Source: Asterias rubens
Taxonomy: Eukaryota
DNA: 64,000 nt
Direction of reading: 5' to 3'
NCBI RefSeq assembly: GCF_902459465.1
Contig: NC_047078.1
Location: 6,572,001-6,636,000, forward strand
The notes under the pieces are model-generated. The model worked only from the letters and a program-made list of their open reading frames with translations, ran no database searches and had not been told where the DNA came from. Below, one piece after another: positions 26,969 to 61,947 of this stretch. Numbering within the stretch: position 1 is the first letter of the stretch; the number at the start of each line of letters is the position of its first letter. A program made the translations under genes and the position numbers.

Positions 26969-29900
26969 ATGTCGCTTCACGAGACACTTCTTATGTTTGT
27001 ATTTGTTGCTTCAGTCGGAATGGAAGGTAAGTTTTGATTCTTCAATAAAAAAGAGTCGTTTTATCACAAATGTGTTGCGTTTGAAAAAACAACGCCTCCC
27101 CTCAAAACAAATAAAAAGAGAAAAAATAATTAAAGCAACAAATTAATTTACAAATCTCAAAATAATATTGACAACGATCACTATTATACTTTGTTTGAAA
27201 TCATAGTCGGCTATTTTGGTATAAATTTATACACGTTTCTTCTATTTTCGTAATTACTTCGACCGGTTTATAAACATGTGGCGGGTTCAAGTTTAATTAT
27301 TTTATTTAATCATTTCCCTTTTATTTTATTGAGAGCAACATCCCTCTCAACTTCTTTTTACTGTCTTTACATGACGTATGCCCTATTGATCCGATGCAAC
27401 ACGCATTTCTCTTGTCGCCAAACTGGGTGTAAAAGGCAGTGGACACTATTGGTAATTACTCAAAATATTTATGAGCATAAAACATAATTTGGTAACGAGT
27501 AATGGGGAGAGGTTGATAGTATAAAACATTGTGAGAAACATCTCCCTCTGTAGTGGAGTAGTTTTCGAGAAAGAAGCGATTTTCCACAAATTTGATTTCG
27601 AGACCTCAGATTTAGAATTTGAGGTCTCGGAATCAAGCATCTGAAAGCACACAACTTCGTGTGGGGAGGGTGTTTTTTCTTTCATTATTATCTCGCAACT
27701 TGAGGAATTGAGTTCAAATTTTCACAGGTTTGTTATTTTGTGCATATGTTGAGATACACCAAGTGAGAAGACTGGTCTTTGACAATTACCAATAGTGTCC
27801 AGTGTCTTTAACATGCACACAGCGACATTGATGGAACTGGTATAAGTCGAGCATTTTGCGGGACTGCGTTCCGCGTGCAAGAGGTCAATGGTGGTCAGCA
27901 GTTTGTAAAAACTGATAGTACCAAAATTAACGTGAAAGTTTTGTTGACGCTAGATGGCAGCAGACTTGATAACCAGGTAAATTGCCATTGTTTATTACGT
28001 TCTGAGCATGTGCACAAAACCGACAATGGATTTACCTGGTAAATCTGCTGCTACCTAGTGTTCCAAAGTTTACAAGTCTTGTTATTCCCTGACTTCCTTT
28101 ACAACTGCAAATCATGGGATATTTGATTCACTGATTATTAAGGGCTTGACATGAATATCACTATAGTCGACTGGGTGAAATTGTTTAACAGGAATTCCAC
28201 TTCTTTATCACACAGTTTACGCATGCGTATGTTATGTCGGCCAGGAAGCAAACTCTGTCAAGGGTGAACCACCTCTGAAGTTACTGCCTGATCAAAACCC
28301 GTGTGAATGCACGGAGTTTCGTCCCGGTGGGGTTAACACAAAGCGACAGGCAAAGCCTCGTGAAGTAACGTTTGGTAATGACGGTCATCCAGAAGGCTGG
28401 ATTGAGAAGGACTGCATCAAAGGTATGACCTCATGTTTGTTGCTATCTTTGCAAGATGGACGATTCGATAACTCGTTTTGGGTTTGTGTCAATAATTGTT
28501 TCATTTTCCGGTTAACTCCTACAGAAGCAGCAACGCCAACTCGTCAACAGCAAGATGATGCCCAGAGTGGTAAGTAGTATTTTTTTTCGTTTTTTTTTTC
28601 GAAAGAAACCCATCGTGCCATATTAATAAAGGAATAAAAGGGTTGCGACGAGTTCTTAAACTGCCGTTCAAAACCAGCAGGGTCGTGGCCGTGCGATAAA
28701 GGCCCTCGCCTTCAGTTTAAGAACAAGTAACTGCTCTTTTATTCCCATTCATAAGTACCTTTATGGTTAAAAGGCGTAATGAAGTATGAAACTCTGTAAA
28801 ACTTATCCGTTTTTCGACGTCCTTGAGCTCTGTACGTGTGTTGCATTTTTATGACTGTGACGGTTTTCGGATATGCATTCGTGCGCGTATGTAATATGCA
28901 TCTAAACGTATCCGAAAACAACCGGTTATAAACGGCTCCAGCTGGTCATTCAACCGTTAAATCACCCCCACGTGACGCGCTCTCCACCAATGGGAATAGC
29001 GAAACTATTATATATATTATATATAACGAAGTAAAATTCTACAAAATAATGTTTACATCTTAGAGACGTTATGTAATAACAATAATTGTTTGTTCTCCCT
29101 TACTAGATACAACTTCCATGCCACCTTGCGACCCCTGGTCCTTAACAACGGACGTATTATTGAACATTCCTCCAATTGGAGAATCATTTCAGTCATACCC
29201 TGTTACACTTGAGTTCACACTGCACGGCTCTACCAGTGATCAGGTGGACATAACCTCTTACAACAACATGAACCCTCTTTGCATTGTTGGTAAGTTAGCA
29301 TTGTTTTGATTCTTAAAACATTGGATTTAAATCATGGTTTATTCTGCAAAGTAAATAACATGGAAGATAATCATAGATTTTTAGAGTTCAATTTTAAAAC
29401 AACTATACAGGAAAGTGCTTTATCGTCTGGAAATACAAATTTACCAAAGTGGTGTTTTTTATATTTTTAGTAAAATTTAAATTAGGTCGTGACACTTGTG
29501 TCCTTAAGCAAGACGCCTAACCATGGTTGGTTCGTAAAGTTGGTAGGTAGTGCTTACCCGCCAGGCTTCTGATGGATCATACCCAAGCCTACATCCGTAC
29601 TGTAAAGGGGGTAACTCTGTTTCAGCCGGAGAGTAAGTGGCAATTGCCCCTGGAAAAATAGTTTTAAAAACTGCCCTGAAAAAATCTTATGTCGTCAAGT
29701 TCTCGACCACTGTCAAAACAACGGACTTGATAGCTGACCAGCAACATGGGTTCATTCCTGGAAGGTCTTTTTCTACAGCATTGCTGTCAGCTAGTACTCA
29801 ATGGCTTCAATCTTTGGACGCACGAGTACCAATGGATGTTGTCTCCTTAGACTTTAGTCGTTTGCATGACACTATAAGCCACAATATTCTTGTTAAGAAA

Positions 29901-31859
29901 CTCCAACTTTGCTACAATATTAAGGGTGCTGCTCTTGACTGGATTGAGTCGTTTGTAACAAACCGCCTGCAACGAGTTGTCTACAAAGGCTTTACTTCAG
30001 ACTGGCTACCGGTCGGTTCAGGAGTGCCACAGGGCTCTGTACACGGCCCCCTGCTTATTGTTTTGTACGCTAACGATCTTCAACTTCAAATTCCTTCAAT
30101 CCTTGTACAGAACGCAGATGACAAATGTTTGTTTAAAAATGATGTAACATGACGCGCCGGATTCTCTACTTCAGAATTACTTCAACACTATAATAGAAAG
30201 GTTTTCGGTAACACCATGTAATGACTATCTCTAATGAGTTGGGTGGTTCTGAAAAGAACCGTTTGTTGAGTTGAAACCAACGGTTCTTTTCAGAACCACC
30301 CAAACTTATTAGAGATAGTCATTAAATGGTGTTACCGCAAACCTTTTTCTCTATCGTATTTCCACCATCATGCAAAGTTTCAAACCCTACTTAAACACTA
30401 TACCGTGTGTCTCAAAAAAAACTATACACCTTTTGAAATGACTGCCGAATAAAAAGTAAATGATTCTGTAGGGAAAGGTTTAGGTGTACGGATAGCTTAT
30501 GGACTGACCTTTGATATGGCACCAATAACTGCGAATTTTTTTTTTGATTGAGTTGATTTCGAGACCTCAGATTTAGAGCTTGAGGTCTCTAAATCAACCG
30601 TTTAAACGCACACAACTTCGTGTGTCAAGGGTGTTTTTTTTCTTTCATTATTATCTCGCAAGTTCGATGACCGATTGAGCTCAAATTTTCACAGGTTTGT
30701 TATTTTATGCATATGTTGAGAAACACCAACTGTGAAGGCTAGTCTTTGACAATTACCAATAGTGTCCACTGCCTTTAAAGGAACACGTTGCCTTGAATCG
30801 GACGAGTTGGTCTCTAAAAAGCGTATTATGTGCTATTGAGCTTTTAATTTTTTAAGCAATCTCAGCTCCCTTGTGAGTTTAGCCTGCTGAAACCAAATCA
30901 ATCCCAATAACCATCAATGTCTTGTTCTACGATACAAAACGTCGTCAACTCGTCCCAATTTCGTCATGTTGCTAAACAATTTCCTGCTAAGCAGAAATGA
31001 GCCGTATGCCTATACCAGTTGTGACATGGTAGTTTGGCCGGTAACCCTTATTTTGCAAGTTAGCGCTACTTCATTGTGCTAAACTGCTGTTGGTGCTTAA
31101 ACAGCTTTATTCATTCAGACTTATTACATTTATTTACATATTTCATGAAACAGTGTAAACAAATAAACTAAGCTATTTAATGAGACAGAGAAAAATAACT
31201 AAATAAAGTATGGAGGCATCATCTGGAAGCCGATGCTTATGTAGGGATGCCAGGGGACAGACAATTAATATAACATAAACGGGGACAAGAACGTACGGAC
31301 AGACAATTAGAACAAAGACAGACATGATTAAGACAACAATGATGAGAATAATAATTAAACAACAATAATTATACCAATAATAATGATAATAATTATTCAA
31401 TCTCGGGGATGTGAAGAAGTGCAAATCCTGATCACCCTTTTTTGAATGGTCATTAGTGAATGAAGCTTGTTTTTAGAAACTTGTGCCCAAATGTTTATGA
31501 AGTTTTATCTTGGATTGGAACCAACCCCAAGTATTTTTTCGCCAGACCTTGATTTATGTGTTTTCTTGTATGTTGTAGAACTGGACGCTGTGAAACAGGA
31601 GACGCGCATCTTTGAAGAATTCTATCCCACAAAAGACTTTCAAGATGCCTTTGATGGCTCCACACACTACTGGGTTACAATCAATCAATACAAACTGGAA
31701 TTTGGTAGACTGGGAGAAACCGAGTCGCTTATTGAGTGTCGAAATAATAAGAACATTGACGACGTTACCATTTGGTCCCAGTCTGATATGACTGTAGCAT
31801 TCTATGGGACCTGTCCTGACGCTGGGTTGTTTGACATAAGTTCCTTAATGTATTTTTAG
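26969..31859 (+). CDS. Secreted protein, array gene 1 (signal peptide + constant Cys-rich domain + Methyltransf_FA-like domain), 257 aa
   Basis: Exons 26969-27026 (MSLHETLLMFVFVASVGME), 28216-28422, 28525-28569, 29107-29289, 31579-31859. All introns GT-AG phase 1, ORF intact. The C-terminal LEFTL..S..D.V.I / HYWVTINQYKLEFGRLGET pattern resembles PF12248 by eye. Confidence 0.85.
27430..27811. mobile_element. Major TTAA-AG MITE copy (opposite orientation)
   Basis: AAGGCAGTGGACACTATTGGTAAT ... CAATAGTGTCCAGTGTCTTTAA. Confidence 0.85.
29715..30150 (+). mobile_element. CR1-like LINE reverse transcriptase fragment
   Basis: QQHGFIPGRS...DVV.LDFS...DTISH.IL..KL...GVPQGSV.GPLL..LYANDL...ADD; truncated with degenerate catalytic motifs; lies in an intron of array gene 1. 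Confidence 0.85.
30199..30344. repeat. Foldback/palindromic element (relative at 61271-61536)
   Basis: Arms AGGTTTTCGGTAACACCATGTAATGACTATCTCTAATGAGTTGGGTGGTTCTGAAAAGAACCGTT and its near reverse complement. Confidence 0.8.
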
Positions 31860-36486: not shown

Positions 36487-39400
36487 ATGTCGCAGCTTAT
36501 TTCTCCCTTAACTGCAGTTTTACTGGCCACTGCCTACTTCCTTATTGGTAAGAACTACTAACTTCATGATGTTAATATTTTATTTAAATTTTCATTCTTT
36601 TATCTGTCTGATTGCCATCTTTTGGGTAATATTGCTCCTTATTTTCGAAAAACACATCTGCCCTTTACGAAACCATTGATCGGCTTAGTATTTGGTTTAA
36701 GCTAGCTTGGCCCGCGGTTGTTTTGGCGATTGCGTGTGCTTTGCGCACGCACTCGGAGTCGGGGCTTCAGACGAGACAGCAAAGCCTGAAGCCAAATCCA
36801 GAGCCCTAGTTTAATTTATACATTATGCTAAACAGACCTTTATCGTGCTACATCCATCTTGGTCATGTGCCACTTATCGAATAACAATAATGAATGCCAA
36901 TAATCATTTTGCAAACAGGAACCAGACTCTTTCATTCTTCAAGCCTTGGTTTGATAACGTTGATATCAATGGGAGAAATTCAAAATGGCAACAGCATGAT
37001 AAAATGTCTATTGAACCGGTCGAACAACAAAAGAGACTTGGAATTAACTCATATACATTTCGTCACACTGAATTATCCTCTTGGCTTTGGCTTAGACTAT
37101 ATAAACGAACAAATTGAATTCAAAATGATATGATCTCACTCTCATCCTTTTTAGCCGACGCATGCGTTTGTTATGTCGGTGATGAAGCAAACTCTATCAA
37201 GGGTGAACCACCTCTGAAGTTACTGCCTGATCAAAACCCGTGTGAATGTACGGAGTTTCGTCCCGGTGGGGTTAACACAAAGCGACAGGCAAAGCCTCGT
37301 GAAGTAACGTTTGGTAATGACGGTCATCCAGAAGGCTGGACCGAGAAGGACTGCATCAAAGGTACGACCAAATGTTTATTCTCTTTTCAAAACGTTTGTT
37401 GGCAGTGTACATTGAGTAAAAAGTGTTGAAACCAAACATGGGCGTGACACGCGAGCTTGTGATTATAAAACGATTTCTTCATTCCTATTGGTCGAGAGCA
37501 ACGGCCGGGATAGTCTGGTTCCCAGACCCAAAAATCCGGGACAGTAGTTTTGCCACATCACGCGATACGCGCGACGCGCACAGCATTCCCTTATAAGGAG
37601 TTGTTTACCCGAGGGCTTTACAATTTCATAGCTGGAGGGGTGTTGTGTTGAAAGAAATCATTGAACCGTTATAATGTTTGCATTTATTTTACTTTTTGAC
37701 CAACAAGTGTTGATGTTTTTTTGACCGAAAAGGTGTTTATGAATGGGAATCAAAGTATGTTGAATGGGTTTTCAACTAGTGGTTTAAACCCGCCGAGGCC
37801 TGACTCTTGATAATTTACCTCGACATCGTCTCGGTAAAATTATCAAGAACCAGGCCTCGTTGGGTTAAAACCACTAGTTAAAAACTGATTCAACACACAT
37901 TGATTCCCATTTTCCACATTTTTTCAAGAACGTCAAGCCCATCCGCATTTAAAGAGCCCAATAATTTACGGGAATGTGAATCCCCTACAACACTTGACGG
38001 CGATCAATTCAAATTTGTTATTGATTTATAGTGAAACAGACACCCCACTTATCTATTTTCATCAAGTATAATGACCGAACCTTTTTTCTATTGTTTAATA
38101 TTTTGTATTTCTTTCCGTCCGCCTTTCGGGCCCGTTTACTTATTGATTCATGTTCTCTTACCCCTCAAAATATGCCCAATTGTTTTCTAATTCACTTGAA
38201 TGCTTACCGAACTTAAATCTTACACTTTAATAATGTTTTGTCTTTGAAATTGTTCAATATTATATATTTTTGTTTCTCCCTGACTAGAGACAACACCAAG
38301 TCACACCACGTCACCTTGCGGCCCCTGGTCTTTCACAACGAACGAAGAGCTGAACATTCCTATATATAGAGAATCATTTCAGTTGATCCCTGTTACACTT
38401 GAGTTCACACTGCATAGCTCAACTGATGATCTGGTTCGGATAATTCCTTACAGCAATTCCATCCGTATTTGTACTGTTGGTAAGTTAGCATTGTTTTGAT
38501 TCTTAAAACATAGAATGTAAATAGAATGGCAATGTGCTTAAAGGCAGTGGACACTATTGATAATAGCTCAAAATATTTTTTTCGCGTCAAAACCTACTTG
38601 GTTACGAGTAATGGGGAGAGGTTGATAGTATAAAACATTGTGAGAAACGGTTCCCTCTGCATTGATGTAGTTTTGTAGAAAGAAATAATTTTCCACGAAT
38701 TTGATTTCGAAACCTCAGATTTAGAATTTGAGGTCTCGAAATCAAGCATCTGAAAGCACACAACTTCGTGTTGTGACAAGGGTGTTCTTTCTTCTATTAT
38801 TATCTCGCAACTTCGACGACTAATTGAGCTCAAATTTTCACAGGTTCATTATTTTATGCATATGTTGAGATACACCAAGCGAGAAGATTGGGCTTTGACA
38901 ACTACCAATAGTGTCCACCGCCTTTAAGCGAAAATATATTATTAAAATATAACTGTTTCCAAACTACAATTTGTTGTTTCAATTATAGCAATTTATTGTT
39001 TAGCCGTAAAGTTTGGTAAAGTATTTGTAAAAGAAACACGTTCTGAGAGAACGGTTATAAAACACATGACATTTGGACAATGTAGACGTGGTATTGAGGT
39101 TTTTTTTTGCATGTACTGCCAAGTGTGTGGTGTACCAATCAATTCAACCATAACTGAAAGTTACATGGGCCCAAATCGTCGAGTTGCTTATCGGCAGCAA
39201 ATAATTGCTTACATTGTCCTGCTGAATAGGAAATGAGCAGGGTATATGTCAAAAATATTACATGTCACCTCATGAACAGTATCCTAATTGTTGTTGCAAC
39301 ATTTTTATAATTTGTTTTTCTTTTCTTTTTTCTTTTGAGTGGAGCTCTAAGACTCCGTTTATTCGTCACCAGTAAAAACAAAGTACAAACAAATTCAATG

Positions 39401-39942
39401 GAACATTAACACATTCTGTTAGAACAATACATTAAGGATAAAAGAGGCTAGTTAAAAGACAATGAACAAAGGTGATATTACATACCAAACAACAAGAACA
39501 TCAAAACATGATAAAATGCAAGAAAAAACGTTAAACTTAAAACGAACGTAAAGGAAAGTAACTTGGAAGATGAAATTATTTTTACTTAGCTACCTTTGCA
39601 GCTCTATGACAATGGGCCTCGAATGAGGTCCTGCAACGCAAGTACTATCCAACGAGAACCTGATTCTATCATTCATTGTTTATTTTAGATCTGGACGCCG
39701 GATCTCACCAAATGGGCATAAGGGGAAGCAACGCTACCATACAGAACTTTCAAGATACCTTTGATGGCTCCACACACTACTTAGTTACAATCAATCAAGA
39801 CAAAATGGAATTCGGTAGACTGGGAGAAACCAAGTCCCTTGAGTGTCAAACAAATAAGACCATTGACGAAATTACCATTAGGTCCGAATCGGATATTATG
39901 ACTGTAGCTTTCTATGGGACCTGCCCTGACACTGGGTTTTAG
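36487..39942 (+). CDS. Secreted protein, array gene 2, 237 aa
   Basis: Exons 36487-36547 (MSQLISPLTAVLLATAYFLI), 37155-37361, 38288-38479, 39689-39942; GT-AG phase 1, ORF intact. Confidence 0.85.
37435..37910. mobile_element. Dispersed CpG-rich repeat ending in a ~170-bp palindrome (37742-37910); relative at about 23060-23400
   Basis: Shared GGCGTGACACGCGA...CATTCCTATTGGTCGAGAGCAAC...CACATCACGCGATACGCGCG; palindrome ATGGGAATCAA...TTGATTCCCAT. Confidence 0.7.
38538..38927. mobile_element. Major TTAA-AG MITE copy
   Basis: Same TIRs; inserted about 60 nt after exon 3 of array gene 2. Confidence 0.85.
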
Positions 39943-45580: not shown

Positions 45581-45962
45581 TTAAAGGCAGTGGACACTAT
45601 TGGTAATCACTCAAAATGACGATTTGCATAAAACCTTACTTGGTAACGAGTAATGGGGAGAGGTTGATGGTATAAAACATTGTGAGAAACGGCTCCCTCT
45701 GAAGTGACGTAGTTTTCGATTAAGACGTATTTTTCCACGAATTTGATTTCGAGACCTCAGATTTAGAACTTGAGGTCTCGAAATCAAGCATCAGAAAGCA
45801 CACAACTTTGAGTGACAAGGGTGTTTGTCTTTCATTATTATCTCGCAATTTCGATGACCGATTTAGCTCAAATTTTCACAGGTTTGTGATGATGTTATGT
45901 TGAGATACAGCAAGTGAGAAGACTGGTCTTTGACAATTACCAATAGTGTCCAGTGTCTTAAA
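45581..45962. mobile_element. Major TTAA-AG MITE copy
   Basis: Same TIRs and body. Confidence 0.85.
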
Positions 45963-47964
45963 ACACAATTTCTGCTTTCGACTTTGTTTTTAGGCTATTT
46001 GAGGTAAAAACGCGCTTTTTAAGTTTTATGGTTGGAATCAAAACAAGGTTGAGTTTAGGTTTCGGTACGTGCAAGACAATGAAGTGCTTGTCAAAAATGA
46101 AGGGTGTACTATCGCGAAGTCAGACCTACTCTAAAACTTGGACGCGCTTAATCGAGGAAAAAAAACAATACGGAATAGCCTTTGTTTGTTGACAAACACT
46201 TTATGTCTAGTTATTATTGTTACTATTGTTATGTTAACTGGTACAGTAGTTTTGTACGATGTTGCAAGTCCTACAATACATCTGTAAGTGGGTGCTTTTT
46301 TAATTGCTGGGCTGGCGTGTTTAGTTTGGGTGGAGACATTTCGAGTAGACATTAGTTACGGCTTGATGTGCTAATTTTGATGTTTTAACACTATGTTTCC
46401 CATTCACACGAAGAAATTGTAAATGATCATCTTGCGAGATTATTTTTATATAAAAAGTACATCACATAAAGAAGGCGATGAAATGAGGCTTATTCAGGCT
46501 CGTTACCATGGAACTAGTATTATTAGTATTGATGATATTATTTGTTTTGGGGAGGTGGGGTGTATGACAAAAAATATGAGAGGGGACAAGTTGGGAGGAC
46601 TTGCCCTCTCAAGAGGTTTTGCTGAATTACAACCATTTGTTGCACTATTTTTTCGTGATTATTTTTGTAATTATAGTATTTTCTGAAAAACAACTCATTA
46701 CAGCGTTGCATAAATTATAGAGCATGCACAGTTTAATGCTCAGAGGGTGCATTCCACCAGTGGGTCCTCTTTTAACATCATTGTGTTTGTCATAATTTAA
46801 CAAGATTAAAGAGATACAGGAACACAATTATTTGCTCAGGTTTTTGTTTATTATTCATTGCACAGATACGATGCACATACAATATTTTGGAGGGACGTTT
46901 TCTTCATCTGACTTAAACAGAACGCTATATATTTGTTTTGGTTTTGGTTTTTATTGACGATGATGATTTTTATACTTTTTATGCAAGTTCGCTCATCAAA
47001 ACAAGCCACTCTACGTAAAGGGCTACAAGGAAGAAAACATAGAAATGCAGAAACTCAGTGGAGCTGAAGGTAGGAATTGATATTCCTTGCAAAAGATGAC
47101 AGACCATAGGATGAACGATAACATGCACCAGTCAAGTTTGTCTGTTGACATTTCCACGGAGCTGATGAGGGTGATGACTAACAACGGGATTTAGGTCATG
47201 CAAAGGACTTGTTGATATATGAGGCTATAAAATCACAACTTACTGGTATCAAATGAGATTCTACAAGCATCGAAAACCAGTCGACCACCAAGTTAAAAAA
47301 GAACCAGTACAGTTCCTACCAACAGTGTGTAAGTTCACTTAAACGAAAAATGGAAACAACTTAACTCTTCCCAAATATTGGTTTCTCAATTAACCCTTTG
47401 TTCCAGGCTGGTACTTCCATCAGTCTATAGCTGAACGACAGCCTGATGTTATAGTTATGGCACAGCCAATCAGCTTTACGAGTTGTTCCCCTTTGAGTGT
47501 TAGTTCCTCTACAATTCTAGTTTAATTACGTGTGTATTCAGCAATGAATACTCAATCAGAGAAACGTTTTGATATTAGGACTTGGTAGCAAGCGTGCTTG
47601 GTCCTGGCATTGACTTCAGTTTGTCTTATTAAACCTCAATTGTTATGATTTTGCTGTGGCAATGCCAATTACGGAGTATTCACACTTGGGCGCACGCCTT
47701 CTCGCTGAACGTATACGATCGTCGTTTTAGTTTTGATGCAATCATTTCAGCGTGTAAGAGCAGTAAATACTTCAACCCAACACAGCGGATGCGCAACTAA
47801 ATTTCTGTTGTTTTAGCAGATAATGTGAAACTTAGTGAACTGGCAACTGTTAAATTGTTAACTTTTTCACTTCGAGCTCTGCTTTCAGAATCAACAACCT
47901 TAGTCAACCCGGCGAACGCTGTAGAAAACAGACACCTAGTATAGTAGGTTCGCCTTTTATCAGC

Positions 47965-50900
47965 ATGATGTTCAATGTGATATGTCTCGCGTTTGCAATG
48001 CTACTTGTTGCGTCAATCGTAATGAAAGGTAAGGCATGTTCTAACACACAAGGGAAAGTAATTTTTTAAAAGGGGATACCAAATTTGACTACATGTACAT
48101 TGATCTGAACGAAATTATGTACCATGATCATTCGCCACTCGCTATGGTCTCCAGTTACCTTTGTTCTTGTAATAATATAACATGATTATAATACATTAAA
48201 ACTATTTTTCTTTCTTTTTTCTTGTCGATATTTTGACGTGTTGTGATATTTTTTAAATATTTGGTAACGCAATTTTTAAAATAGTTAAAGGTACATCAAT
48301 CTCTTGAATGATAGCACGTACTTAGTTCTAGTAAAATATTTAAATTGAGCTAACACTGTGGTACCATTTAGTCATTTTCACAGTGTAATGTCAGATATTG
48401 TTCATATTCAAATGTAAAAAGACGATACGTAATCGGGTTTATTTGTTAACAATTGTTGTACCATGTTTTTACATACTTACCAATTTACGGGGATTTACGT
48501 TTTTCCCTTTTTTGTTTCTTTATTTTTGTGTATGTTTTATAGCCTAAATAGACGGTGTTCACTGTCTGCCTTAAGTTTGGTAAATTTGATCACGCACTTC
48601 ATTCAAATATAAAACATTTCACTAAGTAAATGTTCCTAAAAAAAAAATTGTTCATCATTTTTTATTTCAATTTGAAATGACGATTAGTTTCTCTTGAAAT
48701 TGCTGATTGTATACAATGTACATCACTGTGTTCGTTTAAAAAAGGTATATTGACTGATGATATATAGGTTCAACGCAATTTAAACATAATTAAATATATA
48801 AATGCATCAATATATAGAACAATAATAATGTATTTGAGACGACGGATAATGTAATTGAGATGACGGGGAAATTACTGTTTCCGTTTAACCTCACAGCCGG
48901 CGCCTTCGTATGTTATGTCGGTGATGAAGCAAACTCTATCAAGGGTGAACCATCTCTGAAGTTACTGCCTGATCAAAACCCGTGTGAATGTACGGAGTTT
49001 CGTCCCGGTGGGGTTAACACAAAGCGACAGGCAAAGCCTCGTGAAGTAACGTTTGGTAATGACGGTCATCCAGAAGGCTGGACTGACAAGGACTGTATCC
49101 AAGGTATCGAACTCATCAAATCATATAATTATTTTAATTTTGTTTTGTTCATTTTGTATACATTTTTATTTCTGATGCTTCATTTTGCAGCAATTTCCAA
49201 GTATGTAGTCTTTGGTAATCAAAACGCAACCTGAAAAAAGTAATTTCGGATTTTTCCCTACGCCCATGTGTGTTATAGCACTGTATATCACTCACCACTT
49301 TCCCGAGGTCTGTGGAAAAAAAATCACAGGGCATATTACTCGGGTGGGTCAAGTTAAACCCACGACCTTTGGTGTTATAAAGCAGTGTCTTACCAACTCG
49401 AGTAATATGCCTGTGATTTTATTCACATAACTCGGGAAAGTACTGAGTGCTATTAAACACACTAGAGTTAAACTAAACTTGTATTATTCTCTCGCAAAAT
49501 TTTGGTGTTGACTTGGCTCGAAGCTAAACCGAAGTGAAGTTCCCGCACAAATGCAGCATGGCGACGGTGTTGTTTTACGTAACTGCATTTAATTTGTTGA
49601 ATAAGGGAACCCTGCCCCTTGCAAAAGGACACCCGGGGGAAACCCTGGAAAAATGTGCGAAGTCATAAAAGGACCAACTGGATTGGGTTTAGAAAGCCCA
49701 TCCAACATGACAGAACTAGCCAAGGTGTGTTTTGTGACCAATGAATAATGTATGATAAAATGAACTATTTTTCCGCGATGCAAATTTAGCAACTGATTAT
49801 GTTGTTTTCCCTCATTAGAGATGCAGACAAGTGGTAACATAACGTCACCGTGTGCCACGTATTCCTTGCAAAGTTATAAAGAACTGAGCATTTCACCATT
49901 AGTGGTGTCATCTCAGCCGTACCCAGTTACGCTTGAGTTTACGCTACAAAGCTTGAACAACAATGACGTGGTGGAGATAGACTCCTTCAGCATGGATAAT
50001 TATCTTCTCTGCCGTTTTGGTAAGTCAGGATTGCGTTGATCGTGTGAATTCCAGGAACTTGAGGCCTTTTCACACTAGCTCAATTTCGAACCGCGTTGAA
50101 ACCTAACCCGTGTCCTCTCCGGTTCAACCTCACTTCTTTTCAACACGGATCAGAGTAAAGCAACATTCTTACTTGGGCCAATTTTATAGAGCTGCTTAAG
50201 CGAAAAAGTTGCTTAAGCACGAAAATAGCTCGCTTATTTTACACGTTACTGGCCAAAATTTCATGCCATATACATTGCTTTTGACTAGTATTTAGCTGTT
50301 GTTTACTTAGCATAACAATTGAGTAGAGTCTTGGCCGGTAATCTGATTTTACTAAGAAATGAATTTTTTGCTTAAGCAAAATTTTGTGCTTCAGCAGCTC
50401 TATGAAATTGGGCCTTGGTCTTTACGTGAACCGGCTAATGCGTGAACCGTATATAGATTCACACCGGAAAAAAATGCAATTTCGATCCCGATTGAAATTT
50501 TCAACCCTGGTCCCTGACAGGGTTGATTTCAACCACGCTAGAGCATGCTACCCGGATCGGAAGCGGATTGAAAATTTTACAGTGTGAAACGGGTTGAACA
50601 AAATCTCCGGTTTGGAACCGGTTCCGACCCCGATATTTTGGACAGTGTGAACAAGCCGTTGTTGAGTTCAAAATTCAAACACTTATTAAAAATACGACCA
50701 AACTGCCACACCTTTGGTCACTGCTGTTGTCAATAAAAGAAAATTGTTTGTTTTTAATTCGAATAGCTTTGGTAGCCAAATTTAAATTACTTAATTGTAC
50801 TTCTTTTTAGTAAAGCGCTTCAAACGCAATCGTTATCACTTTGCAAATAAACACAAATTAAAGGCTCTAAACTATAAAAAAAAACTTGGTAATGTACCTC

Positions 50901-51978
50901 GTATCGAACAACAATAATGAATGCTAATAATCATTTTGCAAATAGGAACCAGACTATTTTGTTCTTCCAGCCTCAGTTTGGTAACATTGATATCAATAGG
51001 ATAAATTCAAGATGGCTTTACCATAATCAAGGTCTAAAGAGGATGTCAATACGATTATTCAGGTTTTGGTATTATTATTAAAGTCACCTGGAAATATATA
51101 TTTTTTTTCTTTCAAACATAAGAGTATATGCTTACGAACAATAAAACAATTAATTTTTTGTTTAGTAATTGTTTTTCACGATTTATATGTATAAAAAATA
51201 TATAAAGTTGTTTGGGGGGCTGACTCCGCCTACCCCTTTTGTGACGTCAATCGAGGCAGACTTTGCCTGCAATGCGTATAGTAAACACACGTGCAAAGTA
51301 CATGTACGACCAAATCGTGAGTTGGTACATTTCAAAAAGTGTTATTCTGCATTCCGCAGCAATACACCTGGTCGGCATTGCCGGGAAAAAAAAATTCACG
51401 ACTTGGTCCGTACAGTACTTTGCAATTGTGTTTACTCTACGCATTACAGGCAAAGTCTGCCTCGATTGACGTCACGAACAGCGCCCTCTCGGGTCGGGGT
51501 TTACTCCTAGATTTGTAAATAACATAAGAACTGATTTTTTAAAACCTTAGTTAACTGTTTATTCACATTCCACTCATCAAAACACATATTTTAGTGACAC
51601 AAGCTTTAATTTGAAAAAATACCACTTCCAGGTGACTTTAATATTGACACATTTCTTGTTTTGTTCGGGTTGTGTGTGTAATACAAAATTGTATTGTGTT
51701 TTTTAGAACTGGACATCTTTGCAGATCAGATGCGCAACAGTAACTTCAGAACCACTCAAACAGTAGACTTTCAAGATGCTTTCGATGGCTCTACACACTA
51801 CTGGCTGACAATCAATCAATACAAAATTGAATTCGGTAGACTGGGAGAAACCAGCGCCCTTAAATACCAATCGATGAGTGAGATAATAACCGGGGTTAGC
51901 ATTTATACCCTGTATGGCACGACTGTAGTATTCTACGGGACCTGCCCGGCTGAGGTTGAATCTGCAGACTTTCAGTAA
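47965..51978 (+). CDS. Secreted protein, array gene 4, 247 aa
   Basis: Exons 47965-48028 (MMFNVICLAFAMLLVASIVMK), 48897-49103, 49819-50019, 51707-51978; GT-AG phase 1, ORF intact. Confidence 0.85.
50063..50657. mobile_element. MITE (GGCC..TTCACACT TIR) with a nested second MITE at 50175-50414
   Basis: Outer GGCCTTTTCACACT / AGTGTGAACAAGCC; inner GGGCCAATTTTATAGAGCTGCT / AGCAGCTCTATGAAATTGGGCC. Confidence 0.7.
51078..51641 (+). mobile_element. Kolobok-like THAP element, internally deleted copy in the opposite orientation
   Basis: TTAA-AGTCACCTGGAA ... TTCCAGGTGACT-TTAA; homologous to 11237-12025, with the MPTRCIAAEC THAP start on the minus strand. Confidence 0.72.
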
Positions 51979-52587
51979 ATTATTTCCTTTGTTCAGGACC
52001 ATAAGGTCATTAATGCAGCTCGTATGAATTTCATCAAATTGCTTATGCGTAATTTGGAGCTCCCTGTTTGGTGGGGTTCGTTGATTAAAATTGGTCGTCA
52101 AAGATTTTTTTTTTTACAAAAATCCCATTCGCTTTTTGACAAAAGCATTGATGTGTTGATTAAAAAAAATTGTCATAACGGAGAGGGCGTGAGACCCCCC
52201 ATCGGTTTCATTCAAGACCGGGCTGATTCCCTTCTTTTAGAGGCACCAGACACCTTTTGTCAAAGACAAGTATTCTCACTTGGTGTAATACAAACATAGT
52301 GCAGCAAGAGCACACAAATGTTTGACATAATTTACGTGGTTTCAGGTGCCTAGTGAAGGCTTCAGGCCTGAAGTATTTTACCTGAATTAAATAATTGAGT
52401 GGACAAAATACATCATTCTCATAAAACTACGTTACTTCAGAGTGCAACGTTTCTGACAATGTTTATATCATTGGTACTCCGTTGATCATTCAAGTAAGTT
52501 TTTTATGGTAACTACAAAATTACCAAAAAATATTTGTCAAGTGTTTGTTCTAATTTTTCTTTAAAAAAACGTTTGTAAGAGCTGTCT

Positions 52588-52972
52588 TTAAAGGCAGTGG
52601 ACACTATTGGTGATTACTCAAAATAATTATTACCATAAAAACTTTCTTGGTGACGAGTAATGGGGAGAGCTGATGGTATAAAACATCGTGGGAAACGGCT
52701 CCCTCTGAAGTGCCATAGTTTTCGAGAAAGAAGTAATTTTCCACAAATTTTATTTCGAGACCTCAGATTTAGAATTTGATGTCTCGAAATCAACCATCTA
52801 AACGCACACAACTTTGTGTGACAATGGTGTTTTCTTCTTTCATTATTATCTCACAACTTTGATGACCGATTGGCTCAAATGTTCACAGGTTGGTTATTTT
52901 ATGCATATGGTGAGAAACACCAACTGTGAAGGCTAGTCTTTGACAATTACCAATAGTGTCCACGGCCTTTAA
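52588..52972. mobile_element. Major TTAA-AG MITE copy
   Basis: Same TIRs and body; a partial relative lies at about 52240-52530. Confidence 0.85.
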
Positions 52973-55566
52973 AAGAACACTAATTATGTTGTTTTCTGCT
53001 GGGAAATTTGTTGCTGCTTTCAATTTAAAACCTTGCAAATCTAGTTCGATGGCGTATACACCAGTTTAGGCGTTACACTTTGGCTCGCTTTCTTAGTGAT
53101 TTCATTGTGATAGTTTGTGGATGTGTTTTTAACTCTTACAAACGTTTTTGTGGTCATCCTTTAAGTAATGGAACTTGAGATAATAGTTCATTAGAAAAAT
53201 CAAGACTTCTGAGTGTATTTCAAATTTACAATGAGTACCACACGTTCAAGTTCAATATTTGTAGTGTGCGTTTAAAATATAAACAATCGGATTTATGCTT
53301 AAGAATTGAATTTGTTGTAGTATATCGGTATCGTATATATAGTAATCGTAATTGACAAGACACGTGCGATACACTGTTATTACTATATGTCCATACCGGA
53401 GTCCTAGTGAATTCTTTCCGCCGGAAATTAGGAGGAGGAGGGCGCTATCAGAAGAAGTTTGAACACAGTTCTCCATTTGGGGAGACTGCCCCATCGGCAC
53501 TTGCCATCATTACAGAGAAGTAGCGCTGTTATTAGGAATTTATTTATGCTTTGAATAATTTTAAGAGTACACCCTTTGCAATTGTAGTTAAATGTTCTGA
53601 CCAAGTGATAGAAAATACACTTACGTATTGATTAATGTGTTGTACTTTGTAGATGATCATACAAACGGTTTTAGACAATTTGGTGAAACCGCTGAGATAT
53701 TAAACTGTACTTAAAAAGAATTTTATATATCAGTGATTGTATAACTTTGCCAATTTATAAATTTATTTTCATAATGATTTTCTGACTGATGTTTTTACCA
53801 GTAGCCCATCGACTCACTGATCGTGTACACAGTTTTAGACAAAGCATCCCGGTGTAGGGGATGCTGTTAACGAAAACAAGGGAGAGTACAACAGTGTAAT
53901 AATGAACGGAAAACAAAATTGTGCTATTTTATGCAATTTAATGCTTTTAACCATCCTGTCATTGTAGCTTGCGCTGTTGGATGTGGCTGAAATGAAGTTT
54001 AAACAATTAGTGAAGCAGCCGTACACAAAAACATACATTGGTAAAGCCTTTTGTCACGCAGTTTAATCTAATTTTAAAACGGTAAATAAAAAGACGTACT
54101 TGGCAACGCAATTAATTATATCTTCATCGGAATGGTCTATCAAAAACTTAAATCTATCTTCCCTGCCAAGAATGTCAAAGTCTCTGTATTGATTTACAAT
54201 TATAAACCGACGTAACATTCAGTGCTGATTTCGTCAGAGTACTGGTTGCATAGGTTGAATCACATTGCAAACTCAAAATTAGTTTTTTAACATCGATTCA
54301 ATAGTATCAACAAAGGCTTCATTGTAATGTTATGAACTTGTTGGGCCCCTGTTTAAATCTTATCGAACACTATATATATTTTCAATTTAATTGTACTACG
54401 ACAATTGGCATTCTTTTAGTTTACCATTTGAAAGATCGTCCATAAAACATTGAAAATGTTTTACTCTGAAGAAAAAAGCTACAATACTATTGATTATACT
54501 TATATAGACGATGTGACCTATGTTTACATTCAAACCGCCCTCTGTTGACAAAACACTATATACGTCATGTTTCGCCGGGCACTGAGTTGCGTAGTCATAG
54601 TAAGATTGCGTACACTTTCTAGCTGGCTGCCAAAGCACAAAGGTTTTGCCCGGCGGTATGCGCGTGAATCATGTTATGGTTTTCGTGTGACGTCAGAGGT
54701 CACATCGTCAATAGCTTGGCTATTGTAATAATGTCAATTATGGTACTTGGTACTTGATGAAGTAATCCCTTTGCAGCTAGTAAATAAAAGCTTAACTGGG
54801 ATGATGTGCTGTGAAAGACGCAGTGACCAGTGGTTCAATAAGAGTGAGGATGTGAACAGAATCAGTATAGGATTGAAGTGGATTATGAATCAAAGTGCGA
54901 GAGCAGAAAAATGTAGGCCCACTGGTCACAATGCCCGTAAGGCTCCTTGTAATAATATGGTAATAAGAAGGTAATTTGCATTAAACAAAATAGTTAATCC
55001 AGTCCACGATAACTTCAATGATGACATTTTAAATATATTATGAGAACAATTGATTCCAGCCGTGTCAAACTTCCGTTACGAGAAGATTTTTATTAGGATT
55101 TTAAAATGGAGGTTTACCAAACTCGCCCGTTGTGCATCGCAGCACGAACCAAGTATTAACGATAAACAGGAGCTTTCTGATGTTGTCGTATCTTAATGAT
55201 CGTCTGTTGTTGTGTTGTAGTTATGGCAACACTATTTACAGCGTGTATACGTTCGAGTATGTGCAGTTTGCCTCATCACCGACTGCCCGTTTTTATATTC
55301 TGACGCAGTTACTTCAGTGTTTAGGGGGCTGTGAACACCGCAATTAAACATTCCGGTTGAGCAGTTATGTGGCAAGTAAACGTGAAACTTGGTTATCTCG
55401 AACTAGCATTGTGATTTTTGTTCACTGCATCAAGTAATTGCTTCAAAAGCAACAACCTTAACGATATCCATCGAGCGCCAGTTAACATATCACTAAAACG
55501 GACACCTGGGTGTATGGGGTTAACTCACGTTGACTTAAATCGTCGGCTGTCGCCTTCTATAAAATC

Positions 55567-58500
55567 ATGACGTTCAACAAGGTATTTCTTCCGTTTGTAG
55601 TCCTACTTGTGGCACCAAGCGCAATGAAAGGTAGGAAATGTTCTGACGAAAAAAAAATGCACTTTAAAGGCATTGGACACTATGGGTAATTGCTCTAAAC
55701 AATTATTAGCATAAAGCGGCCTTACTTGGTAACGAGTAATGGGGAGAGATTGATAGCATAAAATGGTGTGAGAATTGGCTCCCTCTGAAATGACTTAGTT
55801 TTCGAGAAAGTAGTAATTTTCCACGAATTTGATTTCGAGACCTTAGATTTAGAATTTGTGGTCTCGAAATCAAGCATCTGAAAGCACACAACTTCGTGTG
55901 ACAAGGGTGTTTTTTCTTTCATTAATATCTCGCAACTTCGACAACCAATTGAGCTCAAATTTTCACAGGTTTGTTAATTTATGCATATGTTGAGATACAC
56001 CAAGTGAGAAGACTGGTCTTTGACAATTACAAAAAGTGTCCAGTGTCTTTAAAGGGGAAGAACAATTTTTACTACAAGTAAATGTGACCGTGAATCTGTA
56101 CAATGATAAATCACCATGATTTCCATCAGTGATCGTTGCTCCTTTCAACAACTTATAAATGCATTAACAAATTGTCGATACTTTGTCTTACCAAAAGTTT
56201 TTCTGGTGTTTTTAAAATTGGGTTATGTAAATTTTGAAATGTTTAGGCTCAAGTCGCACCGATCTCCTAAAATGCATGTGGCAAGTAAGAAGAATAAATA
56301 AATATTAAACTTGCGGGTACAACCATGTGTAAATCTCTTATGAGTGAGTGTTGGCTCTGAAAAGAGCCGGTGTGGTCTCGACGTTTCTATCTCATTCAGA
56401 TTGGGCTTTGGTTTTCAACAATACACTTTAAAGCAAAGTATTGTTTTTTTTTTTTACTGTGTGACTGTTTTAATTCCATATTATGATGACATAGACATTA
56501 ACTCTTAAAAGCACATTATTAGTTTGAAGGGAATTATTTCGCAAATTGTGGTATTATAAACATCTGCATTGTTTCTACCACGTCAGTTTTTATGTTTATT
56601 TATTTTAGAGTAAAACCCAAAGATAAACCCTTCCTTTAAAGACAATCTGAAATAATTATTAGTTTTCACTGTAATGTCAGATTTATTTTCTCTCAGGGTA
56701 ATAAGAGACATGACTGAGAGACATGACTAATAAACTATCTATCTATCTAAAAAAAAAACATGTTTTGCTTGTTTAATAGACCGCCCTCTCTCGTTCAAAT
56801 GGTGAAACAAATCACAATAAGGATGGAAATGACAACCGTTGTTCTTGTATTTAAATCTTTCATGTTTTTAATTGCCGGTTCATATTGGAAAAATATGAAG
56901 AGACTGGTGGTTGCAGACAACGAAGGTGGTTATGATAATAATTATATTCGCTCCTGATAAAATAAAACCTCCCACTTAAGTATGTATTGATCAATATTAG
57001 GACCCGTTTATGCAACCCAAATCACCGCAACGTTAACATATCAACCTTGTGCGGTAATGATCTTAGCAGCTTCGGCTAGCATTGATTAATTAAACGATCC
57101 ATCAATAAAAGCCGGCCACCAAGCTTCTATCGTGTTAGTTGAAGGGGTTACGTTATAATATGTATTCAGTGGAAACTATTGGTAATTACTGAAAATAAGT
57201 CTTAGCATAAAACTTACCTGGTAACAAGAAATGGAGAGCTGTTGATAGTATAAAATATTGTGAGAAACGGCACCCTCTGATGTAACGTAGTTTTCGATAA
57301 ATAAAAGTAATTTTCCACTAAAATATTGATTTCGAGATCTCAGAATTAAATTTTGAGGTCCCGAAATCAAGCATCTGAAGTGAAAGCATGACAGGGCGTG
57401 TTTTTTCTTTCATTGTTATCTCGCAACTTCGACGACCAATATTGAGCTCAAATTTTCACAGGTTTGTTATTTTATGCATACTTATGTTGAGACACTAAGT
57501 GTCTTTGACAATATTATCAAATTGTTTCAGTGTCTTTATTGTTATTATTGTTCTGTTTTTGCGTCACCTTTTCCCTTCCCATTTTTGGCGAATGTATTTT
57601 TTATTTGGGAAATAACTTTTGAATATAGAAATAAATATGAAGAACAAATTGTACCATGATCATTCACCGTACGCAATTGCTTAAAAGTGACCATTGCTTC
57701 TGGTAATAAAATTTCATATAATAACATACAAATTGCTCTATTTAATTTGTATGACCAAAAGTGCTTCTGATGTATTAGGGGCCTATCACATTGGATATAG
57801 TAATTGTTTAAGTGTTACATGTTTTCAACAGTGAAGTCGCACTATTAAAACATGCACGTATTCAGATCGGGTTAACCCTAGCTTTAAACTACACCTATAA
57901 AGGAGAAGTAATCATTTGGATTTTGGAATTATTATATTATATTATTTTAATGCCATGTTTATATGCAATAAAATTGCCATGTGAAAATTTCTATTTCATA
58001 GCGTTATTTATTTAATTGCCGAAAATCTTTAGCGGTTATGTCTGCCCAGAAACAAAACGCCGTGTTTGGAATAAACAATTTCAGAAACATTTCACAATCT
58101 CAGATTGGAACTCTTTTAAGTTCCTATCTCTACAACTGCCTTCCTTTAAAGGGAATTGTTTTTTTTTTAAATTGTATGTATGTTTTCAACAGCTGCAGTG
58201 CTTCACACTTAGACAATGGACTACAACAAAACATGGAATTTTGTTCATAGACCGCCCTCTCTCGTCTATATGGTGAAAACTAAAATATGGTTGAAGGATG
58301 GGAATGACAGCAGTTGTTGCTCAATTGAAATTACATCCTTCAAGCTTTTATCAGCCGGCTCATATTGGAACAATGGATGGGATAGGAGGTTATGATAATG
58401 ATTATTAGTAATTTTTTTCTATTATTAATGTTTTAATGTCATTATGTAAAATAAAATTACAGTGAAATGCATTTTGGTTTTGCGTGTTTAAAAATATGTT

Positions 58501-61500
58501 ATACAAAAATACACACTAAAAATTTACCCTTTTCAAGAAAATACATATGCACATTATTAAATGTCCGTGCTGAAGTATGTACCTATCAATCATCTAGGGC
58601 CTGTTGTTTTATGGTCACAGTTTGTACCTTTAAACCTGTAGCCAGCGTGTGTGTTTGCTGAGCCGTATCTTCCTTTATTTACTTTCCCCACCTGTGTGCT
58701 TTGATAATGGCGCACTTGTTTCCTTTCAAGACGTGTTCATGCTTGACAAATTATGTGGTATGAAAGCTAACGCATGCCATAGCCGCACCCTCCTTCGATT
58801 CTGGGAACCTCGGGGCGGGATGCTGACCGGTGAAAACCTCGGGGATGTGATGTTCACTGCTTCTACCGTGGGGTCTGACGGCGCTACTGGCTGGACGTGG
58901 TATTGAGGGTCTCGGACTACCTTAACTGTGATGTACTACCGAAGGCTACCACGGAAAAATTTAACGACCTCGCCACCAATTTCCGGCCGTTTTTTGTTTT
59001 TGTTTCCTTTGCGCATGGACGACGACCGCCATGATTGGAGCGTTGAACAACAACACTCACACACACAAACATCATAAACATGGCGGAGTTCGATGTCACT
59101 GCGAGTCAAAAACGGCCCAATTTTGACAATTGTTTACAAACTGTTATTTTTCTCTCTTTTTTTCTGGATGTATATGTTATCCGGTAACCCTTCTTCTCAG
59201 GTAAGAAACAAATTCAGTGGTTTTGGAGTTAATTAACGGCGGGCAAATTGGTGGCGACGTGCGGAAAATTATCCACTGAACTAATTGTTATCATACACAC
59301 AATGTTTCAACCGTTGTCTTTGTCAGTTAATTTCGTTTTCTTATTGTTTTGGTAATTCCATCGTTTTATTAGTCTGCCGTGCGTTACGACTATGGGGTTT
59401 AACCTTGTGAGTTGGTCGTACGTAACACTGTTAAGGCAACCACGGAGTACTGTACGTTATAATATTAACCTTGCGGGTAAGGATCTAACAACACTCTGAA
59501 AGGCACTGGACACCTTTGGTATTAATTGTCAAAGACCAGGACTCTCACTTGGTGTATCCAAAAATAGGCATAAAATAACAATTTTTTGTCAAAAAATTTG
59601 ACTCAACTCGAAATTGAAAGAAAATAATGAAGGAAAAACACCAGATGCCCAATAAAAGGTTTCAGGCCTGAAGCCTTTGAATATTATCTAAGTGAGGCAT
59701 TATACCTCTTTCTCAAAAACTTCAGAGGGAGTCGTTTCCCACAATGTTCTATGTTATCAACAGCTCTCCATTGCTCGCTACCAAGTGTTTTTTTACGCTA
59801 ACAATTGTTTTGAGACATTGCTAATAGTGTCCAGTGCATATATTCGAAATTACCTGTGAAATATTATTTTATAATTGATTGTTTTTTTTATCACGCAGTT
59901 AACGCACGCGTATGTTATATCGGTGATGAAGCCAGCTCTATCAAGGGCGAACCACTTCTGAAGTTACTGCCTGATCAAAACCCGTGTGAATGCACGGAGT
60001 TTCGTCCCGGCGGGGTTAACACAAAGCGACAGGCAAAGCCTCGTGAAGTAACGTTTGGTAATGACGGTCATCCACAAGGCTGGACTGACAAGGACTGCGT
60101 CAAAGGTATGACCACAAAATTGCTCCTATTTTGTCACTTATTTTGTTATATTTCTCATGCCTCAATTTGACTATAATCTGCACGCATTTTCACATTCCGT
60201 TTTCTTTAAAAAAAAAAAAAAAACATAGTTAATGACCTGACGTCTTCATCCTAGAGCCTGGAGTCTTTCTAGAAGGCCATTTCCTATTTTTTATTATTTT
60301 TTTTTTTTCATTTATACCATGGTTCCTTTTGGTTGGTAAGCAGGTTGCAACAGCTAGGGCCTAATACAAACATAATCTCATCTCTTCTTTCAAGTGGTAA
60401 TTGAAGTTACCCAACTGTTTTGATTTATGTTTCTTCTTCGACCCATCAGAGAGGCAGACCACTTATACCTCACCACCCTGTGACACATATTCCTTGAACA
60501 GTAAGCAAGGACTAGCCTTTCCTCCTTATGGACAATCATTTCAGTCGTACCCCGTTAAGCTTGAGTTCACTCTGCAGAGCTCAACCAAAGATAGAGTGGA
60601 GATTGACTCTTTCAACATACAAAACATTTATCAATGCACTTTTGGTGAGTAAGTCTGGTATCCATTTTCCCCCCACAAGTTATGTTAATTTTTATTGTTT
60701 TTATGCATGCATACCTATATACACATTTTAAAGACACTGGACACACTATTGGTAATTGTCAAAGACCAGTGTTCTCACTTTGTGTATCTCAACATATGCA
60801 TATGAAAAGTTGAGCTCAGTTGTTCGTCGAAGTTGCGAGATAACAATGGGGGGAAAAACACCCTTGTCACACGAAGTTGTGTGCTTTCAGATGCTTAATT
60901 TCGAGACCTCAAAATCTAATTCTGAGGTTCGAAATCAAGATCGTTACTTCAGAGGGAGCCGTTTCTCACAATGTTTTATACTATCAACAGCTCCCCATTT
61001 CTCGTTACCAAGTTAGATTTTATGCTAATAATTATTTTAAGTAATTACCAATAGTGTCCACTGCCTTTAAGCAAACTTTTGTTATAAGACAGTGTTGTTT
61101 TGTGTGAAAGTAGTCGGTAAAGGCAATAACCAAAATATAATTGTTGCCCCAAAATAATGTTTCCAAACTCTCCCGTTCAGAACCCGCACATTATGTTGCT
61201 TTCCCAAACAAAACCTAAGTTCAGTACACAAGACCAATCAACCAAATCAAAATTATTATTATATAGTAAAAGTTTTGCGGTCACTCCATGTAATGATAAT
61301 CTCTTAATGAGTTGGAGTGGTTCTGAAATGAACCATAGAAGATGACGACCAAAGCATATTCATCGAAACGTCGAGTTGAAAACAATTATTCGATTCAGAA
61401 CCACCCCCACCCCAACTCATTTATTAATTTAATGTGCAAATCGAGAAAGTGATTTTCATGCTGGGCATGATGAATAAAGAATTGAATTGAATTGAAATAA

Positions 61501-61947
61501 ATTGAGATTACCATAACATGGTGTTACCGCAAACCTCACTACATTGTATATCGTATTTCCACCATGCAAAGTTTCAAATCCTACTGAAATATTAATTGTT
61601 TGTTGTTGTTGTTGTTGTTGTTGTTGTTTTGGTTTGTGTGTGTAACATAGTTTCTATCGTACATTGTAGAACTGGACGGCAACTTAGATCAGATGCGCAT
61701 CAAGAAAGACGGCATCATCACACAAACAAAAGACTTTCAAGATGTTTTTGATGGTTCCACACACTACTGGGTAACAATCAGTCAATACAAACTGGAATTC
61801 GGTAGACTTGGAGAAGCCAATGCTGTCCTTGAGTATCAATCGATCAATGAGAAAATAACCCGATGTAGCCTTTGGACCCAGTCTGGCACAACTTTAGTAT
61901 TATATGGGACCTGCCCTCCTGACGTTTCGATTTTTTCTACAAACTGA
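55567..61947 (+). CDS. Secreted protein, array gene 5, 247 aa
   Basis: Exons 55567-55630 (MTFNKVFLPFVVLLVAPSAMK), 59899-60105, 60450-60644, 61670-61947; GT-AG phase 1, ORF intact, AATAAA immediately after the stop. Confidence 0.82.
55664..56052. mobile_element. Major TTAA-AG MITE copy
   Basis: Same TIRs; inserted 33 nt after the signal-exon donor of array gene 5. Further degenerate copies at about 7130-7400, 30545-30778, 57170-57540, 59495-59840 and 61965-62190. Confidence 0.85.
60728..61070. mobile_element. Major TTAA-AG MITE copy
   Basis: Same TIRs and body. Confidence 0.85.

Follow-up and report, generated by a model that had tools for sequence, protein, structure and literature searches.

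Proteins that carry the FAMeT domain (PF12248) include CPAMD8 and, among the footprint proteins of sea stars, Sfp1/3/4a/5/7/8, besides the FAMeT of crustaceans and insects, thioester proteins of the CPAMD8 type and mollusc shell-matrix proteins. These proteins fuse the domain, a beta-sandwich of about 140-150 residues, to DM9, EGF, hyalin, WAP or macroglobulin domains. Here, we describe a tandem gene array in a 64,000-nucleotide stretch of the Asterias rubens genome (the window, along which all positions below are counted), the predicted products of which end in a head domain resembling FAMeT. The head is a beta-sandwich of the same size, PF12248 is its nearest family by language-model features, and its setting, given the predicted secretion, would be as extracellular and non-enzymatic as that of the domain in other sea-star proteins. 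Nevertheless, there are clear differences. The head is the single C-terminal domain of a small protein and is joined to an orphan constant module, and the partner domains listed above are lacking.

Galectins provide a second comparison. The carbohydrate-recognition domains of GRIFIN and galectin-3, -7 and -10 share the sandwich topology of the head over ~122/135 residues at a root-mean-square deviation (rmsd) of ~3 Å, but the identity is 4-11%. Moreover, the family here contains cysteines and a putative signal peptide, whereas classical galectins are cytosolic. A third comparison concerns the architecture of the array. Conotoxin superfamilies and the sea-urchin Sp185/333 genes combine a conserved leader or 5' module with diversified bodies and partial concerted evolution. 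They share with the present array the clustering of paralogs, a near-invariant 5' coding segment beside fast-diversifying ones, and turnover of copy number between close species. The invariant part here, however, is an internal exon of the mature protein while the signal peptide varies, and the homogenised tract is one 207-nt exon with a visible crossover inside it.

We propose, with a probability of roughly 0.65, that the array is an Asterias tandem family of ~240-residue secreted two-module proteins, whose heads are FAMeT-like and whose second exon is homogenised by non-allelic recombination. The first module comes from the single 207-nt exon of phase 1-1, and the second, the beta-sandwich head, from exons 3 and 4. 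The array would evolve by birth and death, through duplications, deletions and pseudogenes, with the heads diverging fast until exon 2 is the sole homology remaining between paralogs. Gene conversion and unequal crossing-over with junctions within exon 2 would then keep this exon near-identical and re-pair 5' halves (promoter and signal peptide) with different heads; the reading frame would be kept because all introns are of phase 1. Most likely, the family is therefore a FAMeT/galectin-like secreted protein in a partially concerted multigene family and no categorically new system.

Concerted evolution of the constant exon

The peptides of the constant exon, exon 3 and exon 4 were run by tblastn against the window, and the splice sites were then read. 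Five complete sets of the three exons were found, plus one extra exon 4, at E values of 1e-13 to 1e-88, far above chance. The sets form five colinear plus-strand genes (g1-g5, Table 1), each with a signal exon, the constant exon and two variable exons; every intron is GT-AG and of phase 1, and exon 2 measures exactly 207 nt in all five copies. The models of g2 and g5 equal XP_033641395.1 and XP_033641396.1 letter for letter, which identifies the genome and validates the gene models. An earlier reading of the window from its letters alone (the sequence-only reading) had proposed five colinear genes with this exon layout, and the models bear this out; the sixth last-exon copy (g0) and an in-frame stop codon in g3 had been overlooked. 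The ending FYGTCP, which it had assigned to all five genes, is replaced by FYVTCP in g3 and LYGTCP in g5. Likewise, the near-invariance that it had ascribed to the N-terminal ~68 residues holds for exon 2, with a mean column identity of 95% and 84-94% identity of each peptide to that of g1, but not for the signal exons, which fall into three types (MSLH..., MSQLIS... and MTFN/MMFN). The exon 1 peptides have 19-21 residues, 55-88% of them hydrophobic, and the grand average of hydropathy (GRAVY) is +1.33 in g5; from these N-termini, secretion of the proteins is predicted.

For comparison we used the locus of Asterias amurensis (L001-L004, CP134970.1 8.59-8.66 Mb, merged to 69.5 kb), which holds eight genes, a1-a8. 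Among the five A. rubens paralogs, exon 2 is 91-98% identical at the nucleotide level, while the 300 nt on each side are at ~40% and unalignable; exons 3 and 4 stand at 59-80%. Across all 13 copies of the two species, non-orthologs are 0.96-1.00 identical at nt 31-180 of exon 2, and their identity drops to random within ~15 nt of its splice sites. The flanking and intron DNA of orthologs is mostly 88-96% identical, whereas paralog introns cannot be aligned.

The silent sites are most informative. In exon 2 the silent-site divergence (pS) is 0.075 between orthologs and 0.066-0.084 between paralogs. In exon 3 the corresponding values are 0.088 and 0.39-0.48, and in exon 4 they are 0.092 and 0.31, a 3-5-fold excess of paralog over ortholog divergence in these two exons. 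Taken over its whole length, exon 2 thus changes at silent sites between species at an approximately neutral rate. That its old paralogs nevertheless differ no more than orthologs do requires the copies to be homogenised. The trees are in conflict in the same way. Exons 3 and 4 together pair g1/a3, g2/a5, g3/a6, g4/a7 and g5/a8 with 100% bootstrap and long branches between paralogs; a tree of exon 2, by contrast, has a star shape in which the ortholog pairs are lost. In addition, the same E/Q and C/T variants of exon 2 are scattered over paralogs of both species against orthology.

A recombinant was found in g1. Upstream of its exon 2 (27852-28210) it is 82-98% identical to a2 and 28-45% identical to a3; downstream (28456-28997) the affinities are exchanged, with 88-100% identity to a3 and 24-82% to a2. 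This switch places a crossover inside exon 2, at about 28260-28410, and g1, which also pairs with a3 in the tree of exons 3 and 4, is a chimera with an a2-orthologous 5' part and an a3-orthologous 3' part. Three marks of exon-limited concerted evolution therefore occur together: the pS pattern, the tree conflict with its shared variants, and a recombinant with its breakpoint in the tract. From these comparisons, we conclude that exon 2 behaves as an island of gene conversion and unequal crossover in a birth-and-death array, and that its constancy, the cause of which had escaped the sequence-only reading, reflects homogenisation between copies beyond conservation.

Could strong purifying selection on the peptide and its nucleotides, for example on a regulatory or RNA-level element, keep exon 2 constant with no homogenisation at all? 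In comparisons of orthologs, exon 2 has a lower ratio of replacement to silent divergence (pN/pS 0.28) than exon 3 (0.72) or exon 4 (0.54), and its core (nt 31-180) shows a pS of only 0.035, whereas exons 3 and 4 together give 0.090 (Fisher p=0.014). Conversion alone does not lead one to expect this core deficit, to which a low mutation rate or some constraint on the nucleotides may contribute. If constraint acted alone, however, exon 2 should differ between the much older paralogs by several times the ortholog value, as exons 3 and 4 do. Instead, paralog pS equals ortholog pS in core and edges alike, and the shared variants, the star-like tree and the crossover in g1 are left without explanation. 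An RNA-level cause also finds no support, since the folding z values of exon 2 (-1.2 and -1.1) give no structural signal and Rfam has no match within the exon. We consider selection alone quite unlikely. GC-biased conversion was dropped as well, because the GC content at third codon positions (GC3) of exon 2 is not raised.

The head domain and the constant module

The structure and database work used g2 and g5, the genes with RefSeq-identical models, together with A. amurensis orthologs. Given an alignment of seven sequences, AlphaFold2 models g5 as all-beta over residues 100-247, at a predicted local distance difference test (pLDDT) of 85-90; a domain-only model of the head reaches a pLDDT of 84.8 and a predicted template-modelling score of 0.80. 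The C-terminal ~150 residues are accordingly modelled with high confidence as a galectin/ConA-like beta-sandwich. The core beta-strand motifs and three cysteines of the head are invariant in all copies, even though exon 3 of g1 and g4 share only 45.2% identity over 62 residues, in agreement with the ~45% once estimated by eye.

The family affinity of this sandwich is judged mainly from a language-model feature search. The heads of g5 (residues 92-247; P0013) and g2 (residues 91-237; P0016) share 44% identity, and for both of them PF12248 clusters occupy the first 16 ranks, with scores of 0.97 (194/256 features) and 0.95 (186/256 features); scores of this size are rated as seldom reached by chance and as usual for genuine members of a family. 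A galectin cluster appears only at rank 66, with a score of 0.82. We regard this search as the discriminating evidence for an affinity of the head to PF12248, and as it holds for two diverged paralogs, 'FAMeT-like' is the best label, although formal Pfam membership is lacking. The sequence-only reading had aligned the C-terminal part to this domain by eye, citing its occurrence in CPAMD8 and Sfp1. The literature agrees on that occurrence, and the likeness is upheld by the language-model neighbours and by the fold, while the Pfam hidden Markov models (HMMs) do not reproduce the match seen by eye. A PF12248-like fold was also looked for, and a shape search of the ESM Atlas aligned the head to a DM9/PF12248 cluster model with a TM score of 0.65 and an rmsd of 3.0 Å over 129/156 residues, a match that stands among many bacterial sandwiches of equal score.

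The head might instead be a divergent galectin or another ConA-like lectin, and a common fold and animal origin would then have misled the language model towards PF12248. Among solved structures, galectins do align best (Z 10-11.5, rmsd 2.8-3.1 Å, ~122 residues; GRIFIN at Z 11.5), with SPRY and GH32 C-terminal domains scoring much like them, and Foldseek puts galectins, GH16/GH32 domains and PL7 lyases beside a FAMeT-named AFDB entry at rank 25. The missing PF12248 HMM match points the same way, but the Gal-bind_lectin HMM (PF00337) is equally silent, the identity to galectins is as low as given above, and PF12248 fills the first 16 feature ranks in both diverged paralogs. Nor did the Protein Data Bank (PDB) yield a sequence relative, searches with the head and with the constant module giving only noise (E >1); if no FAMeT structure has been solved, the PDB ranking cannot favour FAMeT. 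A galectin identity is therefore unlikely, and we retain the FAMeT-like reading of the head.

Several points nevertheless weigh against our overall proposal, beside the pS deficit of the exon 2 core and the GC3 that gives no sign of GC-biased conversion. At E<=10 the Pfam HMMs yield no PF12248 match with single exons, full proteins, the isolated domain or seven members of the family. The exhaustive HMMER search covered the exon 4 profile only, that with the whole-head profile being word-limited, and the structure models rest on shallow alignments of 7-8 sequences. The fold matches do not separate FAMeT from galectin, SPRY or GH32-C sandwiches. Finally, an A. rubens RefSeq protein match was obtained in the protein database for only two of the five genes (g2 and g5).

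The constant module, residues 22-90, has a hydrophilic composition (GRAVY -0.82); four of its cysteines and its KR site are the same in every copy. The term 'Cys-rich' that had been applied to exon 2 is generous at 4-5 cysteines per 69 residues. AlphaFold gives the module a pLDDT <50, and neither the word-indexed protein search nor the PDB sequence search found a relative outside the family; in the language-model search its best score was 0.60, under the noise level, and leads to DUF4789 and EGF at that score were dropped. The module may be a flexible disulfide-stapled segment, or it may have a fold that the shallow alignment hides. Its description as an 'effector/assembly module' lacks support, given the low pLDDT and the failure to find a look-alike in these searches; the broader idea of a shared module with diversified heads agrees well with the near-constant exon 2 and the strongly diverged C-terminal domains.

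An invariant ...GVNTKR|QAKPRE... motif, present in 13/13 copies of the two species, raises the question of whether the constant module is a pro-region, the precursor being cut at KR to release a ~43-residue disulfide-stapled N-terminal peptide. Such a peptide would be hormone-, toxin- or antimicrobial-like, and the variable domain would be a carrier or a second product. A conserved leader with a variable body is a layout that recalls toxin and peptide precursor families, and the module is hydrophilic and predicted to be without a stable fold. However, the furin-type R-x-K/R-R context is absent, no known peptide family was resembled in the searches, and conserved cysteines flank KR on both sides, so that the cleaved parts could remain linked. 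We judge release of a peptide to be very unlikely. Under our proposal, the constant module would have a shared processing, tethering or partner-binding role, and the variable heads would bind diverse extracellular ligands such as glycans or matrix.

These models provide the family with a structure-based identity, a predicted FAMeT/galectin-like head on an orphan constant module, where database entries are labelled 'uncharacterized protein' only and a literature search with gene identifiers and peptide motifs found no mention of the genes. FAMeT domains are prominent in sea-star adhesive secretions, and a small single-domain family would lend itself better to expression, crystallisation and ligand arrays than the giant Sfp proteins do.

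Turnover and distribution of the array

The copy number has changed between the two species, with eight genes in A. amurensis against five and the relic g0 in A. rubens. A. rubens lacks a 4.6-kb segment that holds exons 1-3 of a1 in A. amurensis (L001 7835-12392), while both flanks align at 90-93%. The g0 locus, in which exons 1-3 are missing, has its deletion junction at ~23379-23382; its last exon (tblastn match 23547-23801, E=6e-32) gives way to sequence whose ortholog lies downstream of a1. A 4.6-kb deletion of exons 1-3 thus left g0 as a relic. In A. amurensis, a1 carries a stop codon ahead of FYGTCP, a4 has no ortholog in the A. rubens array, and a 5.4-kb intra-array duplication of 95-97% identity was the source of the 3' half of a2. 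The ortholog of g4 is a7 (P0014). In g3, the in-frame TAA together with FYVTCP indicates that the gene is probably a pseudogene or null allele; its A. amurensis ortholog a6 (P0003) is intact.

These losses invite a bleaker interpretation, in which the array is largely decaying, unexpressed DNA of a dying lineage-specific family. It would account for the g3 stop, the g0 relic, the stop in a1, the RefSeq protein matches confined to g2 and g5, and heads with high pN/pS, where pN between paralogs is at least as high as pS in certain windows of exon 4. On the other hand, open reading frames (ORFs) are intact and splice sites complete in most A. amurensis copies and in four of the five A. rubens genes, the ortholog pN/pS of every exon stays under 1, and the strand motifs and head cysteines are invariant throughout. 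General decay is therefore highly improbable, and the array is better described by birth and death with fast-diverging heads.

A further reading, which we hold to be doubtful, goes beyond this proposal: the constant exon would be a built-in recombination cassette which, as the one homology left between paralogs, channels conversion and unequal crossing-over, and the array would be a repertoire for extracellular recognition in immunity, between gametes or in adhesion, diversified in the germline and peculiar to asteriid sea stars. Promoters and signal peptides would be re-paired repeatedly with lectin-like heads, and copy number would change quickly. The extra silent-site conservation in the exon core might then reflect selection that keeps homology, or an RNA-level function. 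If it were a true recognition repertoire, the family would rank with Sp185/333, FREPs and VCBPs among the diversification systems of invertebrates. As it stands, the locus is an unusually clean case of concerted evolution limited to one exon, with a crossover caught inside that exon by a two-species comparison.

The family appears to be narrowly distributed. When 1.84 billion representative proteins were searched exhaustively by HMMER, the exon 4 profile gave eight matches, six of which are family fragments or members; the other two (P0007 and P0008) are repetitive proteins and were rejected as spurious. A full-length member, the constant module and a head-domain profile, each used as the query of a word-indexed search, returned only A. 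rubens, A. amurensis and short ORFs of ENA marine metagenomes. In the databases searched, the family is restricted to Asterias plus these few metagenome ORFs, as the sequence-only reading had anticipated in calling it lineage-specific. Contigs of the ENA SOLA22-1 marine metagenome (L005-L008) are the source of the divergent exon-4-like ORFs P0005 and P0006, which match the exon 4 profile at E 1.6e-15 and 2e-11. These two presumably derive from other sea stars and hint at a family beyond the two Asterias genomes.

Table 1. Genes of the array and other features, by position in the window
Feature	Position	Strand	Remark
g0 relic	23551..25540; orphan last exon 23551-23825	+	acceptor site, intact ORF ending FYGTCPDAEFYDFDHPLSS
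g1	exons 26969-27026, 28216-28422, 29107-29289, 31579-31859	+	242 aa, intact
g2	exons 36487-36547, 37155-37361, 38288-38479, 39689-39942	+	237 aa, RefSeq-identical, LOC117301482
g3	exons 41792-41852, 42318-42524, 43070-43261, 44431-44699	+	TAA in frame, exon 3
g4	exons 47965-48028, 48897-49103, 49819-50019, 51707-51978	+	247 aa, intact
g5	exons 55567-55630, 59899-60105, 60450-60644, 61670-61947	+	247 aa, RefSeq-identical, LOC117301483
Constant exon 2 copies	28216-28422, 37155-37361, 42318-42524, 48897-49103, 59899-60105	+	g1-g5 in order
~385-bp repeat	27432-27811, 38538-38927, 45581-45963, 52586-52973, 55662-56053		
~385-bp repeat, further copies	17261-17652, 21588-21973, 6385-6741, 60728-61070		
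20-bp-period tandem array	22087-22667		just upstream of g0
RVT_1 fragments	25180-25512; 29637-30149	+	between g0 and g1; g1 intron 3
Histone3 stem-loop	30277-30322	+	g1 intron 3
Histone3 stem-loop	30220-30265	-	g1 intron 3
PIH1 exon	5818-6369	+	open exon
Adhesion-GPCR-like gene span	~14000-64000		by synteny

Surroundings of the array

In the A. amurensis annotation, the array lies within the span of an opposite-strand gene encoding an 830-residue Lectin_C, GPS and 7tm_2 protein, resembling an adhesion G-protein-coupled receptor (GPCR); the array is thus nested in a very large intron. Upstream of the array, the PIH1 exon matches the PIH1 N-terminal domain (E 7e-07) and, weakly, PIH1_CS, which indicates an unrelated PIH1-domain gene.

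The repeat content is considerable. An interspersed repeat of ~385 bp, resembling a short interspersed element (SINE) or miniature inverted-repeat transposable element (MITE) and 79-87% identical between copies, lies in or beside almost every array gene and occurs in the A. amurensis array as well. The 20-bp-period tandem array is ~97% identical between shifted copies and is also found in A. amurensis. The RVT_1 fragments belong to retroelements without long terminal repeats. Directly after the one in g1 intron 3, there is an inverted pair of Rfam Histone3 3'-untranslated-region stem-loops, both above the gathering score.

The A. amurensis ortholog of g5 (a8; P0019) is annotated with 258 residues and a different, non-signal first exon (MAALDWEALDVMLTGANLGDV...). 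A peptide resembling this exon is open in the window at ~58649-58906, ~1 kb upstream of g5 exon 2, and P0019 either has been mis-annotated or uses an alternative first exon.

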